NCBI GenBank assembly: GCA_002269645.1
Contig: NIVC01003952.1
Coordinates: 1 to 64,000 of the forward strand
Origin: Macrostomum lignano
Lineage: Eukaryota
Reading direction: 5' to 3'
Length of the DNA: 64,000 bases
The notes under the pieces were generated by a model that saw only the letters and a program-made list of their open reading frames with translations, was not told the origin of the DNA and searched no databases. This document shows, one piece after another, positions 5,331 to 58,289 of this stretch. Positions within the stretch are counted from its first letter, which is position 1. Every line of letters begins with the position of its first letter. Both the position numbers and the translations under genes were made by a program.

Positions 5331-6074
5331 CTATTTAGTATAAACACCGCGTCTGGCCTTCACTGATGACAGAGCAGGCGGGACTCCGAGCAGCGAGGTG
5401 TCCTGTCCGCGGCTCAGCAGCTCCTCGTTCTGCAGGAACAAGTTGAACACCTCTGGGCTCAGCTTGGTTGCCGGGTCGTCAGGACTCGGAGGGATCACAG
5501 TCGGCGGCTGCTGTGCCACCAGATCGTCCAAGTAGGTCACCGCGTACAGAATGTAGCCGCCGTGAGCGCAGGGCACCACGATGACGTCATCCTTGCTGAG
5601 CAGGGCCAGCACCTCTTCGATTGATGAGGCTCTGGGGAGGCTGGCCACGTCCTCCTTGCTGGCAAGAAGCTGCAGGTCCTTCAAGCCGGGCTGGCACCAC
5701 CTGGCAGCCGCAGGCTTCTGGCCGTTGGGGGAGGCTGCACCACCAGCTGAGCTGCGAGATGAAGCTGATAAGGCGGACACGCATGATGAGGATGAGGCGC
5801 CGGAGGAGTCTGAGGATGAGGATCCGGTCAGGGAGCAGGGCGATGATCGCTGCGTATCATCTGGTGAGGTCGCGGACTCGTGCCTCAGTTTTTGGTCATC
5901 GTTGAGCACAGTGAGAGCGCTGGAGATGGCGGGGAACAGACCGAGCAGATCCCGATCAGCTGATTCCCAAGTGCTCAGCTCAAAGATTCGCTCGTCAGCG
6001 TGTCTGCCAAGCCGCTTGATGAGATGCGACTCGGCTTTGCTGAACTGCTCGAATGGAGTCACTGCGGCTGGCAT
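5331..6074 (-). CDS. Hypothetical 247-aa protein, copy 1 of a duplicated cassette (MPAAVTPFEQFSKAESH...)
   Basis: Intronless ORF with a Ser-rich linker; 10 nt differences over ~234 codons from the copy at 57564-58289. The ATG at 6074 is the start shared by both copies. Confidence 0.7.
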   Translation of the reverse strand: MPAAVTPFEQFSKAESHLIKRLGRHADERIFELSTWESADRDLLGLFPAISSALTVLNDDQKLRHESATSPDDTQRSSPCSLTGSSSSDSSGASSSSCVSALSASSRSSAGGAASPNGQKPAAARWCQPGLKDLQLLASKEDVASLPRASSIEEVLALLSKDDVIVVPCAHGGYILYAVTYLDDLVAQQPPTVIPPSPDDPATKLSPEVFNLFLQNEELLSRGQDTSLLGVPPALSSVKARRGVYTK

Positions 6075-6202
6075 CGTGCAGGCAGAGATGCTGAAGTTAG
6101 CAGGGCTTTGGTGAAACTGCAGATCAAACACCGTTGATGCTCTGTGCTTACTGGCAGCCTTTGGTCTTGGTGTAATTTGGAAGCCTTCGCTTGGATCGCA
6201 AC

Positions 6203-6307
6203 TTTAATAGCCCTGCCCGCGCCCTCTGCCTGGGGGAGAGAGAGCGATTTCGGAACAGCGCGCCTGCCTGCCCTCCAACCCCACCCCCATGGATCCGCCC
6301 AGCCAAT
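6203..6307 (-). promoter_or_regulatory. CCAAT box, GC box and TATTAAA promoter of cassette copy 1
   Basis: CCAAT 6303-6307, CCGCCC 6295-6300, TTTAATA (TATTAAA on minus) 6203-6209; all conserved in copy 2. Confidence 0.55.
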
Positions 6308-7239
6308 GGGCGCGCGACCTGGCTGGCGGCCCACCCCACAACCCCATTTTACTCCAACAAACCGACAACACCTCGCAAGCGGCCGTCCAAGTTCCAACAG
6401 GCGGCGCCTTGCCTTTCCCCTCAAGGCCTTCTCACCCACCACATCTTGCATAAGAGGACTTGCGCAAGCTGATTTAGCGTAACTAAACCCCCGCCGCGGC
6501 CGCAAGTCGGCCTCCTCCCCTTTCTCTAATGCGCCCCTTGTTGTCTTCTCTCTTATATAGTTTTAGTTTAGTCCCGTCCTTATACATACGCCACGAACAC
6601 AATACTACTATGAAAACTAAACCAAAGGCAGCTGCGCCCACCCCAACCACCCGGCGGCTTGTCACATCATTTTCACTTCGCTCCCTGGGTGGGAGGGTGT
6701 CGAGGGGAGTCGGAGACGAAATAAGGGGGGGGATAAAATGCTGGTCTATGGAGGGAAGGAAGGAATGCCTTAAAATCCCCAGAGGCCATGACAATCGCCT
6801 TGGCGGCTTGTGCAACTCGTGTGCCTTTATGACCCATTAAGCTAAACATTCAGCGCTTCGGCCATGAATATCCTCAGATATTCATTCCCAACCCTTCCCA
6901 ATTCCCAATTCCCAATCCCATTCCATTCCCCTGGTTCCACCCCGCCCCTAGCTCTCTCGGTTAGATCAGATCCTCTTACTCCTCTAAGTAATAATAATAC
7001 TAAATGCTCGTGTATTCTATAAGGATTTAGTAGATTAACTATTAGTAGTTCGTATGAGATATCTAAGTGAAATATTGTGGGCTTACTACATGTAAATACG
7101 TCAGGAATGTCAAAGGAGCCACTTGGGAATGTCAGAGCAAACTACTTCGAATGTCAGGGTCAAATTGCTTATCTCACCTTATGGATTTCCAAATCCAAAT
7201 GAATGAAGCAAGCATCGTCCGAGGTTCTCAAGTTTATCG

Positions 7240-7520
7240 AGGTTGTAGTTACGCTCGTAGAACGTTGGACTCACGACTTAAACGTCGGGGTTCGATTCCA
7301 GATCACACTGGAACAACTTGTGTCCTTGAGCAAGAGCTGTAAAATGGGTGCCAGCATTAGCTGCGGTAATTGAGGGTGTGTTTTGCGATACTCCCCAGAC
7401 CTTGGACTGAACAGCCGTACGCAGCCTTCAGATGCGCCGCGCAATAGCTGCGGCTGAGCTGTCAGTTGCACACCTGGCCCAATTGGGGCAGGTGTAATCA
7501 ATTATTATTATTATTATTAT
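7240..7520 (+). mobile_element. tRNA-derived SINE with CORE-like motifs and an (ATT)n tail
   Basis: B-box GGTTCGATTCC 7289-7299; TGTGTCCTTGAGCAAG 7319-7334 and CTGTAAAATGGG 7337-7348 resemble two CORE/MIR motifs; (ATT)n tail 7501-7520. Confidence 0.6.
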
Positions 7521-9404: not shown

Positions 9405-10992
9405 TCAGAGTGTGAGAATCATAAAATGAGATTCTCATTCGATGCGTGAGACTCATACAGTGAGATTCTCATTCAAAGCAAGAGAATCATAAAATGAGAT
9501 TCTCATTCGATGCGTGAGACTCATACCGTGAGAGTCTCATTCGATGCGTGAGACTCATACCGTGAGAGTCTTATTCAATTCGTGAGACTCATACAGTGAG
9601 ATTCTTATTCAATTCGTGAGAATCATGCAGTGAGATTCTCATTCAAAGCGTGAGAATCATGCAGTGAGATTTTCAATTCAAAGCGTGAGACTCATACCGT
9701 GAGATTCTCAATTCAAAGCGTGAGAATCATGCAGTGAGATTCTCATTCAAGGCGTGAGAATCATAGAGTGAGATTCTCATTCAAAGTGTGAGAATCATGC
9801 AGTGAGGTTCTCTTTCAAAGTGTGAGAATCATGCAGTGAGATTCTCTTTCAAAGTGTGAGAATCATGCAGTGAGATTCCCATTCAAAGTGTGAGAATCAT
9901 GCAGTGAGATTCTCATTCAAAGAATCATAGAGTGAGATTCTCATTCAAAGAATCATAGAGTGAGATTCTCATTCAAAGAATCATAGAGTGAGATTCTCAT
10001 TCAAAGAATCATAGAGTTAGATTCTCATTCAAAGAATCATAGAGTGAGATTCTCATTCAAAGAATCATAGAGTGAGATTCTCATTCAAAGAATCGTAGAG
10101 TGAGCTTCTCATTCAAAGAATCATAGAGTGAGATTCTCATTCAAAGAATCGTAGAGTGAGATTCTCATTCAAAGAATCATAGAGTGAGATTCTCATTCAA
10201 AGAATCATAGAGTGAGATTCTCATTCAAAGAATCATAGAGTGAGCTTCTCATTCAAAGAATCGTAGAGTGAGCTTCTCATTCAAAGAATCATAGAGTGAG
10301 ATTCTCATTCAAAGAATCATAGAGTGAGATTCTCATTCAAAGAATCATAGAGTGAGATTCTCATTCAAAGAATCATAGAGTGAGATTCTCATTCAAAGAA
10401 TCATAGAGTGCGATTCTCATTCAAAGAATCATAGAGTGCGATTCTCATTCAAAGAATCAGAGTGAGATTCTCATTCAAAGAATCATAGAGTGAGATTCTC
10501 ATTCAAAGAATCATAGAGTGAGATTCTCATTCAAAGAATCATAGAGTGAGATTCTCATTCAAAGAATCATAGAGTGAGATTCTCATTCAAAGAATCATAG
10601 AGTGAGATTCTCATTCAAAGAATCATAGAGTGAGATTCTCATTCAAAGAATCATAGAGTGAGATTCTCATTCAAAGAATCATATACAGTGAGATTCTCAT
10701 TCAAAGAATCATAGAGTGAGATTCTCATTCAAAGAATCATAGAGTGAGATTCTCATTCAAAGAATCATAGAGTGAGATTCTCATTCAAAGAATCATAGAG
10801 TGAGATTCTCATTCAAAGAATCATAGAGTGAGATTCTCATTCAAAGAATCATATACAGTGAGATTCTCATTCAAAGAATCATATACAGTGAGATTCTCAT
10901 TCAAAGAATCATAGAGTGAGATTCTCATTCAAAGAATCATAGAGTGAGATTCTCATTCAAAGAATCATAGAGTGAGATTCTCATTCAAAGCG
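9405..10992. repeat. 34-bp to 28-bp minisatellite (TCATAGAGTGAGATTCTCATTCAAAGAA)n
   Basis: Divergent ~34-bp units to ~9910, then homogeneous 28-bp units. Confidence 0.95.
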
Positions 10993-11564
10993 TGAGAATC
11001 ATACATGGCGAGATCATTTTTCAGGCAGGACTTTATAGCCTATAGGTTGAGTCTTGTCTGTCTGATTCTGCTAATTACTGACTGACTGACAAGCATTTAA
11101 CAACACATCCACCTGCGTAACGATCTCATTGCTGAATGTTCATGGAAAACTTGCCTATTTTCGTATAGAGCCGCAATGCAAAGAATATCTATAATAATTG
11201 ATTTTAGTCAGCGAGACCGCCGCCCACCTTTAATCTCTCATCATCTGAGTGTCGGACTGGTTTTCCTGTTCCAGGCTTCAGTGTTTCTCACAGTCCCTCA
11301 TACCAAAAGTCTTTTATGCAGAACTTCTGCAGAGCTGGAATCCATTAGCATTCAAGAGTTTAAAATTAATTTCTTAATTACTTTTGGCCTCGTGCCAGGC
11401 GTGCATTTCAAGTGCAATGAAAGTAGAAATTTCTGGCGCTCGGCTTGTGCACGGTTTCAATAAAAGTACAAAACAAATAATTCGGAGTACTTTTGATGCC
11501 AACTGTGTATTTGAATAGTAGCAGAATGTGATACTTGAGTAGCTTTCATTTTCTCATTTTTCGG

Positions 11565-12677: not shown

Positions 12678-13700
<1,023 letters not shown>

Positions 13701-15363
13701 CATATTTCTATCATCTCTTGATTCTAGCACTACCGAGAGTAGTATTATTAGCATCTTTGAACTATTTCCTGTCGTATCTAACAAAAGTTTGTTAGCCATT
13801 TAACTTACCCAGCAAAAGCTACAGATGATTTCCCAGCGGGATTGAGAAGCTCCGAAATTTCTCGCACACAGTTAGAATAGAATCTGTTAGACATTTATCA
13901 TTTCCCAGTGATTAAGATTTTGAATGAAGGAAGTTCCGTTGAGGCTGCGGCAGTGGATACTCGTATAAACTTTCGAAGTGCAGCCTCATCCAAGTACAGT
14001 CATGGTCGATACTTGTGGGCAAAAATCAGAAGCAGCCCGTATATAGTACAAGCTGTACATGAATTCTCGGATATCAGACCAGGCAGGAAGAAGGAAGGAA
14101 AGCAAAATTTTACATGTTGGGGGAAAAATATCCCAATCTGTTGCTACACGCTCCGATTACTTTGGTACAGACAAACATCCGCTCACGGATCGATTCGGTT
14201 GAGAGAGAAGCAAACTGCATGAAAAAAAGATGGAAAATTTTGCATCTCGATTTCCGATATATGAGGCACATGGGCTGCCACTCTACATGCACATGATATG
14301 CATTAAGCCCTTCTCGAGAGGCTTATCAATCTAAGCGTGACTGTCGGTTGAGTCTATTCATTTTTTATAGAAAATCTCTTGGGGCTTAAGTTTAAATCGC
14401 TAGATTTCTTCGACTGTAAATCTGTATGCAAAGATTAGAACCTATAAGTAGTATGAAGCGCGGCGCGTTATCTTAGGAATGTCTTCTATGAAATTACTTT
14501 TAATTTTTAGAGTTTGGGCTTTCCTTTAGATAAAAATGGAAATTCTTCTGTTAGTTTAGAGAAATTTGTTACATTTATATTATTTAGCGGCACATTTCAA
14601 TTCAACAAAAGATACTTCTCTCATATTTCCTCTTTCCGCTCTCCCCTCCTCTCTCCTTTCGTCTCTCCCCTCTCGTCTCTTTCCTCCCTTCTCCCCTCTC
14701 TCTCTCTCCTCCCCTCCCTCCTCTCTCTCGTCTCCCTCTCTCCACTCTCCTCTCTCCCCTCACCTCTCTCCTCTCTTCTCACGCCTCTCCCATTCGACCT
14801 TTCTAGGATGTCCATCCCCACCGAGTGAGCAGTTGCTCGCAGCCCAGCCAGTCGCACGGAGGACTCAGCAACAGCAGCGCATAAGTGAGAGGAGCAATCA
14901 AACCCTTCCTGGAGGCGCTCCGAGGCAATTGCTGAGCTAATTCTGGCTCTCTCTCTGAGCAGCCCCAGAGCTTCATTGCGCCAGCACGAGTAGCCCATAT
15001 AGTCAATAACTGACAGGGCTTGGATAGCTCATGGGACTGAGGGTTGGAGAGGGGAGGCCACAGTCGGATATTATTACAAACTGCCTAGCATAAACAGACA
15101 GCCCTCTAGGACTTCTGAGTCCCAGTTCTTTCCAATCCCCCAGCAACTTCCCCTAAACCCATCGAGAAGGGAGTTAATCAATTTCCACCCTCTTGTTGTT
15201 GCGAGAGGCGTGAGGACGGAGCGACTCAACTTGAGGGGAAAAATGTGCTCAAGCGCGCGCTGCATCGGGCGAAAGAGATGCAAGTGGCTAGAGTAGGGAA
15301 CGCTGCATCATCATAGCTTGAAAATTGTAAGTTGTCCAGCTCGACCCTCTGCTCAGTGAGTAG

Positions 15364-15720: not shown

Positions 15721-16269
15721 GGATGAAATAGCTGCTGTAAGAGATGTTCACTATTCGAATTTCAGTTATATATGTGAGCCTCTGCCTCGAGTTCATTAGA
15801 GTATAGAATTTCCTGTAGAAACGTGACTCAAAAATCGCAAAAGTCCGATGTGACCCCATTGCCCCGTGAAGCTCTGCTCAGCTTGCAACTTTTCCGTCTT
15901 TCTGACAATTCAACTCATGGCGAGGTGGCCATCAAAGCGGATGAAATGACAACGCGGCGCGCATGACACTTCAGCGGATTAGCAGGATGTAGCCCAAGGA
16001 TTATATATTTCCGATAATTACCCTATCGCGAATTAGCTAATTGATGGGCGAAAGTAAGACTGGCTTCAAGACTGTGACGCACGGAGGAAAGGTCAACCAG
16101 TGAAATGGCAAATATAATTAATTATTCATTAATTAGTAGATTTGTCTTGCTTTGGACATTTGCTAGAAGTTATTAATTATTACAGCTATTGGTTATATAG
16201 AGGTGTGTCTGAATATTGAGATCTAGGATGGCTGTTTGATGATTAGAGTTGCTGTGTGAATATTCCGGT

Positions 16270-17503
16270 GTGAATGCATTGCAAGAAATGAGTGAATAAG
16301 GAACGGGAACTGTGTGACTGCATTGCGAGAAATAAGTGAATAAGGAAGGGGAACTGTGTGACTGCATTGCGAGAAATGAGTGAATAAGGAACGGGAACTG
16401 TGTGACTGCATTGCAAGAAATGAGTGAATAAGGAAGGGGAACTGTGTGACTGCATTGCGAGAAATGAGTGAATAAGGAAGGGGAACTGTGTGACTGCATT
16501 GCAAGAAATGAGTGAATAAGGAACGGGAACTGTGTGAATGCATTGCGAGAAATGAGTGAATAAGGAACGGGAACTGTGTGACTGCATTGCGAGAAATGAG
16601 TGAATAAGGAACGGGAACTGTGTGACTGCATTGCGAGAAATGAGTGAATAAGGAAGGGGAACTGTGTGAATGCATTGCGAGAAATGAGTGAATAAGGAAC
16701 GGGAACTGTGTGACTGCATTGCGAGAAATGAGTGAATAAGGAACGGGAACTGTGTGACTGCATTGCAAGAAATGAGTGAATAAGGAAGGGGAACTGTGTG
16801 ACTGCATTGCGAGAAATGAGTGAATAAGGAAGGGGAACTGTGTGACTGCATTGCAAGAAATGAGTGAATAAGGAAGGGGAACTGTGTGACTGCATTGCGA
16901 GAAATGAGTGAATAAGGAAAGGGAACTGTGTGACTGCATTGCAAGAAATGAGTGAATAAGGAACGGGAACTGTGTGAATGCATTGCGAGAAATGAGTGAA
17001 TAAGGAACGGGAACTGTGTGACTGCATTGCGAGAAATGAGTGAATAAGGAACGGGAACTGTGTGAATGCATTGCGAGAAATGAGTGAATAAGGAAGGGGA
17101 ACTGTGTGAATGCATTGCGAGAAATGAGTGAATAAGGAACGGGAACTGTGTGACTGCATTGCGAGAAATGAGTGAATAAGGAACGGGAACTGTGTGACTG
17201 CATTGCAAGAAATGAGTGAATAAGGAAGGGGAACTGTGTGACTGCATTGCGAGAAATGAGTGAATAAGGAAGGGGAACTGTGTGACTGCATTGCAAGAAA
17301 TGAGTGAATAAGGAACGGGAACTGTGTGAATGCATTGCGAGAAATGAGTGAATAAGGAAGGGGAACTGTGTGAATGCCTTGCGAGAAATGAGTGAATAAG
17401 GAAGGGGAACTGTGTGACTGCATTGCGAGAAATGAGTGAATAAGGAAGGGGAACTGTGTGACTGCATTGCGAGAAATGAGTGAATAAGGAAGGGGAACTG
17501 TGT
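16270..17503. repeat. 44-bp minisatellite (GGGAACTGTGTGACTGCATTGCGAGAAATGAGTGAATAAGGAA[C/G])n
   Basis: About 28 units; produces spurious ORFs in all three minus frames. Confidence 0.97.
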
Positions 17504-18713: not shown

Positions 18714-18947
18714 ACTTAAAGAGAAGTCAAGAAAATGCAGTTGTAATATGCTCAACAATTGATTAGTTTTATTTACTCAAACGGCGGACCCGACGGTCGT
18801 GCCCTGCGTTTAGATGCTCGCTTGGGTGATTGCAAGGGATTTTATCAACTGGGGGGGGGAGGAGGCTGAAGCTGTAAAATATGCCGCTTGGATTGCATCG
18901 CGCTGCTGCGGAGGTTGAAGTAAAAAATATAGATGGTAAACGCCAGT

Positions 18948-19180
18948 CTGTCCACCTGTCTGTCTACCTGTCTGTCTACCTGTCTGTCTACCTATCCGTA
19001 TACCTGTCCGTCTACCTGTCCGTCTAACCGTCCGTCTACCTGTCCGTCTACCTGTCCGTCTACCTGTCTGTCTACCTGTCCGTCTACCTGTCTGTCTACC
19101 TGTCCGTCTACCTGTCTGTCTACCTGTCCGTCTACCTGTCTGTCTACCTGTCCGTCTACCTGTCTGTCTACCTGTCCGTC
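18948..19180. repeat. 12-bp repeat (CTACCTGTC[C/T]GT)n
   Basis: Direct tandem array. Confidence 0.9.
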
Positions 19181-19284
19181 TAGCTATTTATAGTCAAGGG
19201 GCAGAGTTTCAGTAAAGCGCGATCAATGTGTTCCGTCAGTTATTAATGTTTGTCCGCCAGAGCATCGGTAATTTCTACTGTTTC

Positions 19285-19661
19285 TCAATTGCTGGCCTTC
19301 TTCTTCTTTTTCTTGTCTTCGTCCTTGCCGTGACTGTCTTCGTCGTGATGGCGGCCGTGATGCTTCGCCGACTTCTTGCCTCGGGCGGCCCGGCGATAGT
19401 AGCGGCTGTAGTAGTCGCCAAGCAGGTCGTCAATGCCCTGATAGTTGCAGTCGGAGTCGCAGGAGGCTACAAGGCTGCCTCGGAATCCAACTGGACGGCG
19501 GTTGCAGCACTGGCCGGCCGGACAGTCCGAGTCCTGGGTGCAGCTGCGGGACAGGAAGCTGGGCTGGGCCGGCAGCTCGTAGCTCGAACTGGATGACGAG
19601 GCGGCGGAGACGGGCGGCGACGAATCGCCGTGACCGCGTCGGCGACAGAAGCCGCCCATGC
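19285..19661 (-). CDS. Secreted cystine-knot precursor, exon 3 (terminal)
   Basis: Acceptor cag|GC ATG in phase 1; encodes the last Cys of domain 1, RRR, a second 6-Cys domain, RRAARGKK and a His/Asp/Lys-rich tail; TGA at 19285. Confidence 0.85.
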
Positions 19662-19685
19662 CTGATGCGCATGAAAAAGAGGTAG

Positions 19686-20700
19686 ATGTGTGAATCGGGT
19701 TGGAGGTGTGTGAATCCGGTAGGATATGTGTGAATCGGGTAGGTGTGTGAATTGGGTAGGAGATGTTGTGAATTGGAAAGCTGTAGGAATCGGGAAGGTG
19801 TCTGTGTGTGTGTGTGTGTGTGTGAATCGGGTAGGAGATGTTGTGAATTTGGAAGGAGATGTGTGAGTCGGGAAGGAGATGTGAATCGGGAAGAAAAAGT
19901 GTGAATCAGGAAGCAGATGTGTGAATCGGATAGGTGTGTGAATCGGGAAGGAGATGTGAATCGGGAAGGAAGATGTGAATCGTATAGTTGCGTGAATCAG
20001 GTAGGTGCGTGAATCGGGAAGGAGATGTTTGGATTTGGAAGATGTGAATCGGGAAGATGTGAATTGGGAAGGAGATGTGTGAATCGGGAAGGAGATGTGA
20101 ATCGGGTAGGAGATGTGAATCGGGAAGGAGATGTGAATCGGGAAGGAGATGTGTGAATCGGGAATGAGATGTGTGAATCGGGAAGGAGATGTGTGAATTC
20201 AGTAAGTGTGTGAATTTGGTAGGTGTGTGAATCGGGAAGGAGATGTTTGAATTTGGAGGATGTGTGTTTCGGCTAGGTGTGTGAATTGGGTAATGTGTGA
20301 ATCAGGATGGAGATGTGAATCGGGAAGATGTGTGAATTGGGTGGGTGTGTGAATCGGGAAGGAGATGTGAATCGGGAAGGAGATGTGAATCGGGAAGGAG
20401 ATGTGTGAGTCGGGAAGGAGATGTGAGTCGGGAAGGAGATGTGTGAGTCGGGAAGGAGATGTGTGAATTCAGTAAGTGTGTGAATTTGGTAGGTGTGTGA
20501 ATCGGGAAGGAGATGTTTGAATTTGGAGGATGTGTGTTTCGGGTAGGTGTGTGAATCGGATATGTGTGTTTCGGCTAGGTGTGTGAATTGGGTAATGTGT
20601 GAATCAGGATGGAGATGTGAATCGGGAAGATGTGTGAATTGGGTGGGTGTGTGAATCGGGAAGGAGATGTGTGAGTCGGGAAGGAGATGTTTGAATTTGC
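19686..20700. repeat. ~20-bp degenerate minisatellite (GTGAATCGGGAAGGAGATGT)n in intron 2 of the cystine-knot gene
   Basis: Begins ~25 nt from the exon 3 acceptor. Confidence 0.9.
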
Positions 20701-21289
20701 ATGGGTACGAGCTCGTAGGTGTATGAATCGATTAGATTCGATCAAGTTCGAAATGCACTGCTAGGCTGGCTGATCAGCAGTGATGGTTGAATTTGCTCAT
20801 TTGCTCATAGCTCAGACATTTAACTAGCAAATCCGACCCCAGCTAGAACTCGACAAGTTCCCCCGTCAATCAGAAGTCTGCGAACTGCGAAAAAATATAT
20901 AGGAGAGGATGGAGAGGGTGCAGTGAGGGGAAGGGAAGGAGGAATCCCAATTGGGAATAGGCAATTGGGGAATATAACAGCACTCGCGGTGTCGTCTCTC
21001 TCCGTTCGCCAGAGTGGGTGGGGGCACCGCAGCGCCTGCGACCGAATTCAATTACCTCGAATTACCCGGAATGAGAGTCCGATGGCCAGAGTGGGAAGTG
21101 TCCCCTAGGGCGGGCTGCTTAAGCTGGGCTACTTGTTCTCGTGCGGTCAGCTGGCTCTGCACTATTTATGTATGCACGTATAGCCCCAGTATAAGAGTAT
21201 AGAGCCGCTCCACCAGAGAGCAGAAACTCGAATTTCTGCAGCCAAGGGAGACTCAATTGGCGGGCGAATAAGTAGGGGTTGGAGGGTTG

Positions 21290-21843
21290 GGGTATTCCCT
21301 ACTGATGAGTGTTTGAAGGGCTGGGGTATTCCCTACTTAGAGTTTGGAGGGCTGGGGTATTCCCTAGTGAGTGCTCGGAGTGCTAGGGTATTCCCTACTG
21401 AGTGTATGGAGGGCTGAGGTATTCCCTACTGAGTGTATGGAGGGCTGAGGTATTCCCTACTGAGTGTATGGAGGGCTGAGGTATTCCCTACTGAGTGTAT
21501 GGAGGGCTGGGGTATTCCCTACTGAGTGTATGGAGGGCTGAGGTATTCCCTACTGAGTGTATGGAGGGCTGAGGTATTCCCTAATGAGTGTATGGAGGGC
21601 TGGGGTATTCCTAGTGAGGGTGTTGGGAGGGCTGAGGTATTCCCTATTGAGTGTATGGAGGGCTGGGGTATTCCCTACTGAGTGTATGGAGGGCTGGGGT
21701 ATTCCTAGTGAGGGTGCTTGGAGGGCTGGGGTATTCCTAGTGAGGGTGCTTGGAGGGCTGGGGTATTCCTAGTGAGGGTGCTTGGAGGGCTGGGGTATAA
21801 TTATATTCCTAGTGAGGGTGCTTGGAGGGCTGAGGTATTCCCT
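21290..21843. repeat. 31-bp minisatellite (GGTATTCCCTACTGAGTGTATGGAGGGCTGA)n
   Basis: ATTCCC recurs at 21390 and 21421; ends ~20 nt from the exon 2 donor. Confidence 0.9.
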
Positions 21844-21866
21844 ACGGATAGAATAATCGAACCGAC

Positions 21867-21951
21867 CTTGCAGGTTGCTGTTGCCAACGGCGCACTGCAG
21901 TCCCTCGCAGCAGCCGCTGTCGCTCACGCAGTACGAGCCCTCGGCTTCGCA
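21867..21951 (-). CDS. Secreted cystine-knot precursor, exon 2 (CEAEGSYCVSDSGCCEGLQCAVGNSNLQ)
   Basis: cttgcag| acceptor and G|gtcggt donor; 85 nt, phase 0 to 1, matching both neighbours. Confidence 0.85.
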
Positions 21952-22055
21952 CTGCAAGATTATAAAACGCAAATTTTTTGAGAAATCAGCCCCGTATTTA
22001 CCAGAGTTCATGGTATGAAAACAGTCAAAATCTGTCATGAATAATGCAGGTTCAC

Positions 22056-22145
22056 CTGGACGTAGAAGTCAGAGTTGCCATTGAGTCGAACGAAAGCTTG
22101 GGCAGAGCCAGCGACCAGCAGGACGATGGCCAGAACAGCCGACAT
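22056..22145 (-). CDS. Secreted cystine-knot precursor, exon 1 (signal peptide MSAVLAIVLLVAGSAQA-FVRLNGNSDFYVQ)
   Basis: ATG at 22145, hydrophobic core with an A-x-A cleavage motif, CAG|gtgaac donor; 90 nt. Confidence 0.85.
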
Positions 22146-22404
22146 AGCTAGCTAAACTTTTAGCTTGAGATTCTATGCGCGGGTTTGAGAGATTTGGCGA
22201 AGAAGCAGTCCCGGTTGCTGGGACAATTCCGTCTGTTTTGTAGCTACTCAAGCTCAAGACAGCCAATGGGGCCATTGAGGCGCGGATGAAGGTAGCTGGG
22301 GGAGGCCCTGTCATTGGACCAAGCAGGCGGACACGGATCCTCTTTTATCAAGGAGTACGGTATGGGAAGTCATTGCCTGTCTTTGAGTATCTCTTTAGTG
22401 TCTG

Positions 22405-22415
22405 GCTGTCTGTCC

Positions 22416-22463
<48 letters not shown>

Positions 22464-22505
22464 GCCTGTCTGTCTGTCTGCCTGTCTGTCTGTCTGTGTC
22501 TGTCC

Positions 22506-22580
<75 letters not shown>
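22405..22580. repeat. (GTCT)n microsatellite
   Basis: Direct tandem array. Confidence 0.95.
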
Positions 22581-23810: not shown

Positions 23811-47491
<23,681 letters not shown>

Positions 47492-53294: not shown

Positions 53295-54860
53295 GTTTGA
53301 AGACCAAAGGGGTTTATGAGCCGTCAAATTGGTTTATGGAAGACCAAAAGTGGTTTATGAGCCGCCAAATTGGTTTATGAAAGACCAAAAGTGGTTTATG
53401 AGCCGCCAAATTGGTTTATGAAAGACCAAAAGTGGTTTATGAGCCGCCAAATTGGTTTATGGAAGATCAAAGTGGTTTATGAGCAGCCAAATTGGTTTAT
53501 GAAAGACCAAAAGTGGTTTATGAGCCGTCAAATTGGTTTATGGAAGATCAAAGTGGTTTATGAGCCGCCAAATTGGTTTATGGAAGATCAAAGTGGTTTA
53601 TGAGCCGCCAAATTGGTTTATGGAAGATCAAAGTGGTTTTTGAGCCGCCAATTTGGTTTATGGAAGATCAAAGTGGTTTATGAGCCGTCAAATTGGTTTA
53701 TGGAAGATCAAAGTAGTTTATGAGCCGCCAAATTGGTTTATGGAAGATCAAAGTGGTTTATGAGCCGTCAGATTGGTTTATGGAAGATCAAAGTGGTTTA
53801 TGAGCCGTCAAATTGGTTTATGGAAGATCAAAGTGGTTTATGAGCCGCCAAATTGGTTTATGGAAAATCAAAGTGGTTTATAAGCCGCCAAATTGGTTTA
53901 TGGAAAATCAAAGTGGTTTATGAGCCGCCAAATTGGTTTATGGAAGATCAAAGTGGTTTATGAGCCGCCAAATTGGTTTATGGAAGATCAAAGTGGTTTA
54001 TGAGACGCTAAATTGGTTTATGGAAGATCAAAGTGGTTTATGAGCCGCCAAATTGGTTTATGGAAGATCAAAGTGGTTTATGAGCCGCCAAATTGGTTTA
54101 TGGAAGATCAAAGTGGTTTTTGAGCCGCCAATTTGGTTTATGGAAGATCAAAGTGGTTTATGAGCCGTCAAATTGGTTTATGGAAGATCAAAGTAGTTTA
54201 TGAGCCGCCAAATTGGTTTATGGAAGATCAAAGTGGTTTATGAGCCGTCAAATTGGTTTATGGAAGATCAAAGTGGTTTATGAGCAGCCAAATTGGTTTA
54301 TGAAAGACCAAAAGTGGTTTATGAGCCGTCAAATTGGTTTATGGAAGATCAAAGTGGTTTATGAGCCGCCAAATTGGTTTATGGAAGATCAAAGTGGTTT
54401 ATGAGCCGCCAAATTGGTTTATGGAAGATCAAAGTGGTTTTTGAGCCGCCAATTTGGTTTATGGAAGATCAAAGTGGTTTATGAGCCGTCAAATTGGTTT
54501 ATGGAAGATCAAAGTGGTTTTTGAGCCGCCAATTTGGTTTATGGAAGATCAAAGTGGTTTATGAGCCGTCAAATTGGTTTATGGAAGATCAAAGTAGTTT
54601 ATGAGCCGCCAAATTGGTTTATGGAAGATCAAAGTGGTTTATGAGCCGTCAAATTGGTTTATGGAAGATCAAAGTGGTTTATGAGCCGTCAAATTGGTTT
54701 ATGGAAGATCAAAGTGGTTTATGAGCCGTCAAATTGGTTTATGGAAGATCAAAGTAGTTTATGAGCCGCTAAATTGGTTTATGGAAGATCAAAGTGGTTT
54801 CTGAGACGCTAAATTGGTTTATGAGACGCTAAATTGATTTATGAGATGCAAACTTGGTTT
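53295..54860. repeat. 40-bp minisatellite (TTTATGAGCCGCCAAATTGGTTTATGGAAGATCAAAGTGG)n
   Basis: About 39 units, each a dimer of two related 20-bp halves (TTTATG...GG). Confidence 0.96.
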
Positions 54861-55319
54861 ATGGAAGAGTAGGAAGACCAAAAAACTTTTAGAGGGTTGG
54901 ATTCGCTTCTAAGAAATTATTCCTGATTCTAGGGTTTATTATGTACTGGGCAAGCGAAGCGATTGTGCCTTAGTAGACGAAATACAGGTTTAATTACAGG
55001 TGAAATCTATTAGAGAACCTTCAAGACTTAACTAATTATTCAATTTTGGGGGTTGCGATTTTATATTTTATTTAAAAGCTTTCCTATATAGATTGTGGCA
55101 GCCCCTTACCCAGCTGGTATAGACACCTGATCAATGTGCAGTCAAGGATTTCAGATGCGATTCTATAATTGCCTGCATACATATATACCGAATTGCAAAT
55201 GCAGCTAAATGTATGGCTAATATAAATCTAAGATGTTAAAACAAACCCATGCAGTTTTAAATCACAATTAAGATCTGTCATTCAAAAGTCACACACTTTA
55301 CTAGACTTTAAATCTATAG

Positions 55320-56872
55320 AGTCAGATCCCGACTCTATATTGTGTCAGATCCCGACTCTATATTGTGTCAGATCCCGACTCTATATTGTGTCAGATCCCG
55401 ACTCTATATTGTGTCAGATCCCGACTCTATATTGTGTCAGATCCCGACTCTATATTGTGTCAGATCCCGACTCTATATTGTGTCAGATCCCGACTCTATA
55501 TTGTGTCAGATCCCGACTCTATATTGTGTCAGATCCCGACTCTATATTGTGTCAGATCCCGACTCTATATTGTGTCAGATCCCGAATCTATACTATGTCA
55601 GATCCCGACTCTATATTGTGTCAGATCCCGATTCTATATTGTGTCAGATCCCGACTCTATATTGTGTCAGATCCCGAATCTATACTATGTCAGATCCCGA
55701 CTCTATACTATGTCAGATCCCGACTCTATAATGTGTCAGACTCCGACTCTATACTGTCAGACCCCGACTCTATATTATGTCAGATCCCGACTCTATACTA
55801 TGTCAGATCCCCCACTCTATATTGTGTCAGATCCCGACTCTAAATTGTGTCAGATCCTGACTCTATATATTATGTCAGATCCCGACTCTATATTATGTCA
55901 GATCCCGACTCTATATTGTGTCAGATCCTGACTCTATATATTATGTCAGACCCCGACTCTATATTATGTCAGATCCCGACTCTATACTGTGTCAGATCCC
56001 GACTCTATATTGTGTCAGATCCCGACTCTATATTCTGTCAGATCCCGACTCTAAATTGTGTCAGATCCCGACTCTAAATTGTGTCAGATCCCGACTCTAT
56101 ATTGTGTCAGATCCTGACTCTATATTGTGTCAGATCCCGACTCTATACTGTGTCAGATCCCGACTCTATATTGTGTCAGATCCCGACTCTATATTGTGTC
56201 AGATCCCGACTCTATATTGTGTCAGATCCCGACTCTATATTGTGTCAGATCCCGACTCTATATTGTGTCAGATCCCGATTCTATATTGTGTCAGATCCCG
56301 ACTCTATATTGTGTCAGATCCCGACTCTATATTGTGTCAGATCCCGAATCTATACTATGTCAGATCCCGACTCTATATTGTGTCAGATCCCGACTCTATA
56401 TTGTGTCAGATCCCGACTCTATATTGTGTCAGATCCCGAATCTATACTATGTCAGACCCCGACTCTATATTGTGTCAGATCCCGATTCTATATTGTGTCA
56501 GATCCCGACTCTATATTGTGTCAGATCCCGAATCTATACTATGTCAGATCCCGACTCTATACTATGTCAGATCCCGACTCTATAATGTGTCAGACTCCGA
56601 CTCTATACTGTCAGACCCCGACTCTATATTATGTCAGATCCCGACTCTATACTATGTCAGATCCCCCACTCTATATTGTGTCAGATCCCGACTCTAAATT
56701 GTGTCAGATCCTGACTCTATATATTATGTCAGATCCCGACTCTATATTATGTCAGATCCCGACTCTATATTGTGTCAGATCCTGACTCTATATATTATGT
56801 CAGACCCCGACTCTATATTATGTCAGATCCCGACTCTATATTATGTCAGATCCCGACTCTATACTATGTCAG
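55320..56872. repeat. 23-bp minisatellite (GTCAGATCCCGACTCTATATTGT)n with an 854-bp higher-order duplication
   Basis: Rare variants recur 854 bp apart (CTCCGACTC at 55741 and 56595). Confidence 0.95.
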
Positions 56873-57036
56873 AGGCTGCATACTGTGGCTCTATGCTCAA
56901 TACTATTGTAGATGTGTAAGTCTATGAGTCTATCCGTGTCAAAAGTAGAAACAATACAGTGTAGCGATCAAATACTATTATTATATATTTTCTGCGCGTC
57001 CCCCCAGTTCATAAGGTCAGAAAGAGTTAGGGCTAA

Positions 57037-57166: not shown

Positions 57167-57330
57167 TAAATTAGTGGAACCCTTCGCAATGTCGGTCCGA
57201 GTGACTGAGACCAGTAGGCCAGTGAGTTAACGCCAACGCCAATTCTGAATGACCAAGTTCAAGTTCAGAGTGCAGAAAGTCCGAGGAGAAGGGGAGGGTG
57301 ATGGGCGGCCGCCAGCCAGGTCGCGCGCCC

Positions 57331-57435
57331 ATTGGCTGGGCGGATCCATGGGGTGGGGGTTGGAGGGCAGGCAGGCGCGCTGTTCCAAAATCGCTCTCTC
57401 TCCCTCAGGCAGAGGGCGCGGGCAGGGCTATTAAA
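57331..57435 (+). promoter_or_regulatory. CCAAT box, GC box and TATTAAA promoter of cassette copy 2
   Basis: ATTGG 57331-35, GGGCGG 57338-43, TATTAAA 57429-35; ATG at 57564. Confidence 0.55.
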
Positions 57436-57563
57436 GTTGCGATCCGAGCGAAGGCTTCCAAATTACACCAAGGCCAAAGGCTGCCAGTAAGCACAGAGCA
57501 TCAACGGTGTTTGACCTGCAGTGACACCAAAGCCCTGCTAACTTCAGCATCTCTGCCTGCACG

Positions 57564-58289
57564 ATGCCAGCCGCAGTGACTCCATTCGAGCAGTTCAGCA
57601 AAGCCGAGTCGCATCTCATCAAGCGGCTTGGCAGACACGCTGACGAGCGAATCTTTGAGCTGAGCACTTGGGAATCAGCTGATCGGGATCTGCTCGGTCT
57701 GTTCCCCGCCATCTCCAGCGCTCTCACTGTGCTCAACGATGACCAAAAACAGAGGCACGAGTCCGCGACCTCACCAGATGATACGCAGCGATCATCGCCC
57801 TGCTCCCTGACTGGATCCTCATCCTCAGACTCCTCCGGTGCCTCATCCTCATCATACGTGTCCGCCTTCTCAGCTTCATCTCGCAGCTCAGCTGGTGGTG
57901 CAGCCTCCCCCAGCGGCCAGAAGCCTGCGGCTGTCAGGTGGTGCCAGCCCGGCTTGAAGGACCTGCAGCTTCTTGCCAGCAAGGAGGACGTGGCCAGCCT
58001 CCCCAGAGCCTCATCAATCGAAGAGGTGCTGGCCCTGCTCAGCAAGGATGACGTCATCGTGGTGCCCTGCGCTCACGGCGGCTACATTCTGTACGCGGTG
58101 ACCTACTTGGACGATCTGGTGGCACAGCAGCCGCCGACTGTGATCCCTCCGAGTCCTGACGACCCGGCAACCAAGCTGAGCCCCGAGGTGTTCAACTTGT
58201 TCCTGCAGAACGAGGAGCTGCTGAGCCGCGGACAGGACGCCTCGCTGCTCGGAGCCCCGCCTGCTCTGCCATGCCTGCAGCATTTCTAG
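57564..58289 (+). CDS. Hypothetical 241-aa protein, copy 2 of the duplicated cassette
   Basis: Matches 5331-6074 up to ...PPAL (58268), then has a different 7-aa tail. Confidence 0.65.
   Translation: MPAAVTPFEQFSKAESHLIKRLGRHADERIFELSTWESADRDLLGLFPAISSALTVLNDDQKQRHESATSPDDTQRSSPCSLTGSSSSDSSGASSSSYVSAFSASSRSSAGGAASPSGQKPAAVRWCQPGLKDLQLLASKEDVASLPRASSIEEVLALLSKDDVIVVPCAHGGYILYAVTYLDDLVAQQPPTVIPPSPDDPATKLSPEVFNLFLQNEELLSRGQDASLLGAPPALPCLQHF

Follow-up and report, generated by a model that had tools for sequence, protein, structure and literature searches.

The most familiar cystine-knot modules are those of arthropod, cone-snail and plant peptides. In the inhibitor cystine knot (ICK) the cysteines follow the consensus C-x3-7-C-x3-6-C-x0-5-C-x1-4-C-x4-13-C and are paired C1-C4, C2-C5 and C3-C6, with the third disulfide threading the ring. 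The spider double-knot toxins act bivalently, DkTx on TRPV1 and Hi1a on ASIC1a. The prokineticin/colipase fold has ten cysteines, five disulfides and two finger subdomains, and prokineticins share an invariant mature N-terminus, AVITGA, that activates the receptor. Here we analyse 64,000 nucleotides of DNA from the flatworm Macrostomum lignano (contig NIVC01003952.1, positions 1 to 64,000; hereafter the window) and describe on its minus strand a three-exon gene for a protein of 183 residues with a predicted signal peptide and 12 cysteines in two modules.

Xt3a, a xibalbin family 3 member from the remipede Xibalbanus tulumensis, is a double-ICK toxin that activates ryanodine receptors (PDB 7RZ3), and its two ICK domains are joined by a short semi-rigid linker with an extra linker disulfide (PMC9950431). 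In DkTx and Hi1a both modules are ICK duplicates, and the linkers have 6-12 residues (PMC9950431). The protein encoded in the window departs from this architecture of two tandem ICK domains with a short linker, since only its domain 1 is ICK-like and its linker has 34 residues. We consider it probable, with moderate confidence, that the product is an intact secreted two-domain protein that binds an extracellular target via two different disulfide-rich heads.

The three-exon gene and its Macrostomum homologues

Joining 22145-22056, 21951-21867 and 19661-19285 on the minus strand yields 552 nt, a length divisible by three, which translate into the 183-residue protein and end in a TGA stop codon at 19287-19285; an in-frame TAG lies 9 nt 5' of the ATG. 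A sequence-only reading had proposed a hidden three-exon gene missed by the open reading frame (ORF) track, and the splice sites, the frame, the 12 cysteines and all of the motifs were found as it claimed, with MSAVLAIVLLVAGSAQA, RRR, the Ser-rich spacer, CTQDSDCPAGQCC, RRAARGKK and the His/Asp/Lys tail all present in the spliced product. Since the ORF list holds just the exon-3 piece (124 residues, 19285-19659) and read-through fragments, the gene is indeed missed by the ORF track. Four independent lines of evidence, namely codon bias, homologues, a conserved intron structure and a probable homologue transcript, confirm that the gene is real, far beyond chance, and we read it as functional. 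In the proposed frame the codon log-odds, from a table trained on the neighbouring DENND5 exons, were 0.55, 0.40 and 0.25 bits/codon for exons 1-3, and all other frames were negative with a single exception (exon 1, +0.13). The GC content at third codon positions was 0.78, compared with 0.62-0.78 in the DENND5 exons.

An exhaustive phmmer (HMMER) scan against 1.84 billion proteins found homologues, matching P0040 (BOX15_Mlig005172g1/g2) at E 6e-16 over query residues 12-158 and P0041 (Mlig031025/Mlig019154) at E 9e-8 over query residues 5-149; a profile search added P0048 and P0049 to the family. These matches span all three exons. The M. lignano records PAA53895.1, PAA74677.1, PAA82649.1 and UniRef A0A1I8GME6 correspond to Mlig005172g1/g2, and PAA46256.1 and PAA94324.1 to Mlig031025/Mlig019154. 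Searching by word index with the whole protein yielded nothing at E<=10, and no relative was found in metagenome contigs. The top HMMER match of all, P0039 (6326 residues, E 2e-26), was set aside as a compositional artefact, being made of Gly/Ala/Asp-rich repeats without a matching Cys motif.

The five aligned family members are just 33-44% identical overall. At this low identity the signal peptide and a mature N-terminus of the form F/Y-x-R-[LI]-x-G are conserved, all 12 Cys columns are invariant (spacing 6,5,0,4,10-14 in domain 1 and 5,4,0,14,3-4 in domain 2), and little or no variation is seen in C-x-x-D-x-D-C-P of domain 2 or in the R-G of its long loop. The gene structure is conserved as well. 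The first Cys codon is immediately preceded by intron 1 (phase 0), and intron 2 (phase 1) falls five residues short of the sixth Cys, both in the window gene (exons of 90/85/377 nt) and in the reconstructed genes Mlig005172 (exons of 111/76/263 nt, introns of 147 and 2555 nt) and Mlig031025 (exons of 135/85/281 nt, first intron of 243 nt, exon 2 of phase 1). P0049 is encoded on a 925-nt contig from a public sequencing run (Logan, SRR28338164) that is contiguous over both junctions and has stops in frame upstream of the ATG. This contig lacks introns and we have taken it as mRNA, hence as a probable transcript; on that reading the family is transcribed and spliced in the manner predicted for the window gene.

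A non-functional locus, either an ORF spliced together by chance or a pseudogene copy in decay, is hardly credible. Such a view could draw on the lack of a direct transcript for the locus, on the lack of a canonical AATAAA near the stop and on intron 2, which consists largely of two minisatellite arrays (19687-20696, period about 20, and 21280-21798, period 31). Nor were any flanking genes shared between the window and the M. lignano homologue loci when 6-kb flanks were compared. The ORF is nevertheless intact, its introns are GT-AG, its 12 cysteines have been kept, its codon bias is frame-specific and its intron positions are conserved, all of which speak against decay or chance.

The sources call the homologues 'hypothetical protein' or, in UniRef, give them the contradictory names Ixodegrin, WAP, CC, Calglandulin and Prokineticin, which we treat as automatic labels. 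These labels bear out the earlier suggestion that the protein is uncharacterised. No expression or functional data for any member were found in the literature searched, which covered M. lignano gene identifiers in Macrostomum papers, flatworm knottins and Cys-rich secreted proteins. On the sequence evidence this is a small family, present in databases yet unstudied, whose homologues appear otherwise only in Macrostomum flatworms.

The two cysteine-rich modules

The cysteines of domain 1 are residues 31, 38, 44, 45, 50 and 64, and the loops between them (6, 5, 0, 4 and 13 residues) fit the ICK consensus. When a four-sequence profile of the domain was compared with PDB, it matched Xt3a (7rz3) at E 4.7e-8 and 36.4 bits, with both Xt3a knots aligned. 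They share EG-x-[FY]-C, S-D and CC-x-GL-x-C-[RK] with the domain, as well as [YG]-G-V-C. The next matches, about 20 at E 0.04-1, were ICK or related small disulfide-rich chains, including DkTx, purotoxin, ProTx-II, tachystatins, the sea-anemone peptide Ms11a and three Dickkopf-1 chains. The domain stays below the Pfam cut-offs, with 13.9 bits for Toxin_12 PF07740 (up to 16.8 in P0049) against 21 and 14.8 bits for Conotoxin_I2 against 27, and the matches of the structure models to ICK toxins in Foldseek all had E>0.1. We conclude that domain 1 is, by its sequence, an ICK-type module in which the knotted disulfide pairing would be expected; the cystine knot that had been proposed for this part of the protein is supported, at the level of sequence, by the spacing and by the match to the solved Xt3a structure.

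The domain 1 spacing and the CC-x-GL-x-C motif also occur, exactly and twice, in a protein of Tetrahymena thermophila annotated as 'transmembrane protein, putative' (XP_001031946.2, P0042; E 1.2e-4). This protein differs in lacking domain 2 and the Tyr-rich motif and in its other architecture, and the resemblance probably concerns the generic ICK module alone. It passes the Pfam Toxin_12 cut-off (22.1 versus 21 bits), and a ciliate is an unexpected home for a spider-toxin-type family.

Domain 2 is of another kind. Its cysteines (residues 99, 105, 110, 111, 126 and 130) leave loops of 5, 4, 0, 14 and 3 residues, which break the ICK consensus in that the fourth loop is far above the 1-4 residues allowed and the fifth is below the minimum of 4. 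Aligned with domain 1 it scored an hhalign probability of 4%, and the proposal of tandem cystine knots is not supported for the second domain. In the AlphaFold models, which were made with and without the five-sequence alignment and reach an overall predicted local distance difference test (pLDDT) score of 53-54 and 71-79 in the Cys cores, the stretch of domain 2 from the CC pair to the fifth Cys forms a long beta-hairpin (strands 110-116 and 121-127, pLDDT about 72-77). There was no significant PDB or Pfam match to domain 2, the best in PDB being at E 0.37-5 and via the CxxDSDCxxG motif only. The same motif alone accounts for the sub-threshold matches to the Squash, WAP and Dumpy models.

These sub-threshold matches are what would suggest a secreted protease inhibitor on a knottin-like scaffold of the squash or WAP type (Squash E 0.013-0.034, WAP E 0.008-0.02, and E 2-5 for structures of squash trypsin inhibitors). 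Every one of these matches, however, falls under the curated cut-offs and covers only about 18 residues of the CxxDSDCxxG motif, after which the Cys spacing differs, with a CC pair and a 14-residue loop. We hold an inhibitor of this kind to be very improbable.

The resemblance of domain 2 to the colipase fold, which had also been pointed out from the sequence, is weak and partial. A reference alignment was built from MIT1, Bv8, PK1, PK2 and the C-terminal domain of DKK1 and was validated against PDB 1imt (E 2e-42), 2kra, DKK1 and DKK2. Domain 2 aligned weakly with this profile (hhalign probability 32%, P 4.7e-4, 26 columns), in register for the first five cysteines only, and domain 1 reached a probability of 6%. 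The top Foldseek match of both models was the Cys-rich domain of Draxin (5z5k_B, E 0.15-0.18, probability 0.98-0.99), which we take to be Dickkopf-like, followed by ICK toxins; nothing was found at E<=1e-3 for either model. No family member matched Pfam Prokineticin or Colipase at E<=10, and Dickkopf_N, which has a cut-off of 25 bits, reached only 15.5 and falls on domain 1 in the window protein. Moreover, domain 2 has six cysteines instead of ten and no second subdomain, being followed by a Cys-free helix, and the mature N-terminus is FVRLNG, not AVITGA, and precedes domain 1, not domain 2. Because of the cysteine count, the missing subdomain, the different N-terminus and the lack of a significant family match, domain 2 is not a member of the prokineticin/colipase family. 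It may resemble the first finger of the colipase fold.

The same observations bear on the idea that the protein is an endogenous signal of the prokineticin, astakine or Dickkopf type, in which a colipase-fold module would be present in reduced form as domain 2 and a receptor would be activated by the invariant N-terminus, in the manner of AVITGA. The Cys register with the prokineticin/Dickkopf profile, the Draxin match and the conserved motif after the signal peptide would all agree with such a signal, and one UniRef member is labelled 'Prokineticin domain-containing protein' by its source. Against it stand the differences just listed, the failure of Foldseek to find a significant structure and the fact that the source names of near-identical proteins contradict each other. 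We regard a signal of this type as quite unlikely.

Proposed processing and mode of action of the predicted product

With a hydrophobic core at residues 3-13 (mean Kyte-Doolittle value 3.05) and an A-x-A cleavage motif, the N-terminus MSAVLAIVLLVAGSAQA has the canonical form of a signal peptide. The earlier reading had noted this signal peptide, which is conserved in the homologues; the product would be secreted. Between the two modules the linker varies in length and sequence, with a Cys-to-Cys gap of 34 residues in the window protein and 17-27 in the homologues. After domain 2 follows a Tyr-rich segment whose motif LLG[DE]YY[SN]RYYR is found in three family members and whose Y143, Y146 and Y147 are invariant in all five sequences. 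A basic cluster stands directly after the Tyr-rich motif at the same place across the family (RKKR, RKKR, RGKK and an RRFGR end), whereas only the window protein has the 28-residue His/Asp/Lys tail.

The sequence-only reading had seen in these features a prohormone or polyprotein, from which convertases cutting at RRR and at RR/G-K-K would release two different knotted peptides and give an amidated C-terminus. The window protein does contain all of the sites concerned, RRR (65-67), RR (148-149) and GKK (153-155), and the position of the C-terminal basic cluster is conserved. In the Mlig005172 protein an RR stands three residues before domain 2, and the Mlig031025 protein ends in ...YYPRRFGR, a potential RF-amide. 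In two of the three homologue types, however, those of P0049 and Mlig031025, the linker has no dibasic site, and where a site is present, in the Mlig005172 protein, it lies at the opposite end of the linker. A Gly precedes the basic cluster in the window protein (GKK) and in the Mlig031025 protein (FGR) and is absent from the Mlig005172 protein and P0049 (SYRKKR), where RKKR replaces the proposed G-K-K amidation signal. Neither mono- or dibasic sites flanking each peptide nor an amidation Gly, as would be expected of a prohormone, were conserved in the family alignment. The predicted C-termini also differ among members (R-amide, free Tyr and RF-amide), unlike those of a conserved bioactive peptide. 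We therefore think a polyprotein unlikely. Since the linker RRR is not conserved and the C-terminal basic cluster is, an intact two-domain product is likelier than a polyprotein, and trimming of the C-terminus would fit the conserved cluster behind the Tyr-rich motif. As a separate observation, processing of the C-terminus of P0041/P0045 (Mlig031025/Mlig019154), ...DDQYENYYPRRFGR, would leave a peptide that is acidic, rich in Tyr and closed by RF-amide. This end is superficially like sulfakinin or NPF-type C-termini and is not conserved in other members.

We propose that the signal peptide is removed after AQA, which would expose the conserved N-terminus F-V-R-L-N-G, and that the chain would then fold into two independent three-disulfide modules, with the poorly conserved linker as a flexible joint between them. 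The first would be the ICK and the second would have its own fixed Cys spacing and long beta-hairpin, followed by the conserved Tyr-rich helix. At the conserved basic cluster a convertase probably removes the species-specific His/Asp/Lys tail; the product from F18 to R152 has a computed mass of 14.5 kDa and an isoelectric point of 5.3. By analogy with two-domain disulfide-rich peptides that act as whole chains, the most likely view is that this product would act outside the cell as one two-headed ligand on a surface target, which could be a channel, a receptor or a protease. The N-terminus and the Tyr-rich helix, in which acidic residues stand beside Tyr so that the latter could be sulfated, may add binding determinants. 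More tentatively, and with rather little confidence, we suggest that the family represents flatworm-restricted hybrid two-headed ligands that combine a true knot, a reduced prokineticin/Dickkopf-like finger and a possibly sulfated Tyr-rich helix. Such a ligand would be either the first peptide toxin or defence knottin of a free-living flatworm or a cytokine-like signal with a receptor-activating N-terminus.

Several points weigh against the view of an expressed, intact two-domain ligand. RRR directly follows domain 1 in the window protein, so that cleavage into two peptides is possible for this particular protein. The gene itself is known from genomic sequence, and the P0049 contig belongs to a homologue. 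An exact-product look-up of the exon-3 ORF in a collection of 15 billion proteins returned none, and the HMMER scan gave no match to the 183-residue protein at E<=1e-30. Within 500 nt of the stop there is no canonical AATAAA, only a TATAAA at 19192. The AlphaFold confidence is low overall for the full protein. Finally, the proposed function is deduced throughout, no tissue, target or phenotype having been found in the literature for any family member.

Genomic surroundings and comparison with known systems

The features of the gene and its product are collected in Table 1, together with the neighbouring DENND5-like gene.

Table 1. Positions in the window of the candidate gene, the predicted parts of its product and the adjacent gene
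Feature	Position	Strand	Description
Exon 1	22056..22145	-	90 nt, ends in phase 0; ATG, predicted signal peptide and mature N-terminus FVRLNGNSD; from translation, GT donor, codon score and homologue alignment
Intron 1	21952..22055	-	104 nt, GTGAAC...TTGCAG; homologous introns of 147 nt and 243 nt at the identical position
Exon 2	21867..21951	-	85 nt, phase 1 at its end; codes for Cys 1-5 of domain 1 (CEAEGSYCVSDSGCCEGLQC...)
Intron 2	19662..21866	-	2205 nt, GTCGGT...CATCAG; Mlig005172 counterpart of 2555 nt at the same position and phase
Exon 3	19285..19661	-	377 nt with stop; sixth Cys of domain 1, linker, domain 2, Tyr-rich motif, basic cluster and tail; tblastx to M. lignano exon 3
Signal peptide (predicted)	22145-22095, residues 1-17	-	MSAVLAIVLLVAGSAQA; predicted cleavage after AQA
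Domain 1	19645..21951, residues 31-64, split by intron 2	-	C-x6-C-x5-CC-x4-C-x13-C
Linker	19543..19644, residues 65-98	-	RRR, then Ser/Pro-rich spacer, probably disordered; pLDDT <50
Domain 2	19447..19542, residues 99-130	-	C-x5-C-x4-CC-x14-C-x3-C
Tyr-rich C-terminal segment	19381..19437, residues 134-152	-	DDLLGDYYSRYYRRAAR; predicted helical (134-153, low confidence)
Basic cluster and tail	19288..19380	-	G-K-K at residues 153-155, then His/Asp/Lys-rich tail 156-183
DENND5-like gene	23814-45820	-	uDENN/DENN exon 45095-45820; RUN 28330-28758; PLAT 24837-25691; terminal RUN exon 23817-24035

Upstream of the candidate, on the same strand, lies a DENND5-like gene with uDENN/DENN, RUN, PLAT and RUN domains in this order. 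It spans more than 22 kb, its introns are repeat-filled and its best database matches, which are vertebrate, are at most 41% identical. The terminal RUN exon closes with a stop at 23814-23816, which is 1.67 kb before the candidate ATG, and the candidate is therefore a separate gene. That its exons might be 3' exons of DENND5 is ruled out by this stop and by the candidate's own ATG behind an in-frame stop. The DENND5 introns also hold remnants of mariner/Tc1-type transposases (Transposase_1, DDE_3, HTH_32) on the plus strand, antisense to DENND5, at 26904-27844, 42906-43821 and 44225-44974. A plus-strand tRNA-Ser(CGA) gene lies in a DENND5 intron at 36332-36413 (Rfam 66.8 bits; ARAGORN).

The minisatellite load of the window is extreme, with 50 Tandem Repeats Finder rows of score >=200 and periods mostly of 13-60 bp (for example 1-1405, 9405-11005, 12678-13716, 16268-17503, 30732-32779, 53299-54868 and 55321-56873), and many of these arrays account for long ORFs in the list that are spurious. 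Microsatellites of the (GACA)n type stand on both sides of the candidate gene (18946-19182 and 22399-22580) and also beside an M. lignano homologue. An inverted duplicate at 5366-6331 and 57307-58272 is 97.9% identical over 966 bp at a distance of 51 kb. Each copy carries a Ser-rich ORF of 241-266 residues without a Pfam match, and the pair may represent a segmental duplication, two members of a gene family or a mobile element. An element of roughly 190 bp at 7241-7432, single-copy in the window and containing the tRNA T-arm-like GGTTCGATTCC, has a counterpart of about 71% identity lying 3-4 kb upstream of each of the three Mlig005172 copies in M. lignano (L001 2753-2965, L002 1917-2128, L003 1601-1813). 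It matched no Rfam family and is either a short interspersed nuclear element (SINE) family shared with Macrostomum or a conserved non-coding element. A tblastn search found no second copy (paralogue) of the candidate gene within the window.

If the gene is expressed as predicted, it would extend cystine-knot modules to free-living flatworms in an unusual architecture, where the knot is combined with a three-disulfide module of another type and with a Tyr-rich helix. As lineage-restricted secreted Cys-rich proteins are common, the find is no surprise in principle. It also illustrates that short multi-exon genes for secreted peptides, with introns filled by repeats, escape ORF-based annotation in such genomes. 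RNA interference, in situ hybridisation and transgenesis are established in M. lignano, and the function of the family is therefore directly testable there.

Compared with its M. lignano homologues from Mlig005172 and Mlig031025, the window protein shares the signal peptide, the N-terminus, the 12 cysteines, the YYxRYY motif, the basic cluster that follows it and the three-exon layout. It is only 33-46% identical to them and differs in its longer Ser-rich linker with RRR, in GKK in place of RKKR and in having its own 28-residue His/Asp/Lys tail. With prokineticin/MIT1/Bv8 and the Dickkopf C-terminal domain its domain 2 aligns weakly, in register, through C-x-x-D-x-x-C-x-x-G-x-CC and a predicted hairpin loop to the next Cys, and Draxin is the top structural match of the models; from prokineticin and Dickkopf the domain is set apart by its six cysteines where these have ten and by the absence of the second subdomain, of AVITGA and of a Pfam match. 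Like DkTx and Hi1a it would carry two disulfide-rich modules on one chain, and the DkTx knots match domain 1 weakly (E 0.08-0.14), as does the structure in Foldseek; in contrast to DkTx and Hi1a, its two modules are not detectably related to each other. Xt3a is likewise a two-domain, secreted, disulfide-rich protein, features that are here predicted from the gene, whereas the window protein has a second domain of another type, a disordered linker of 34 residues and a C-terminal helix. What is new is thus a member of a small unstudied Macrostomum family, whose architecture is a variation on the known double-knot toxins and colipase-fold ligands.

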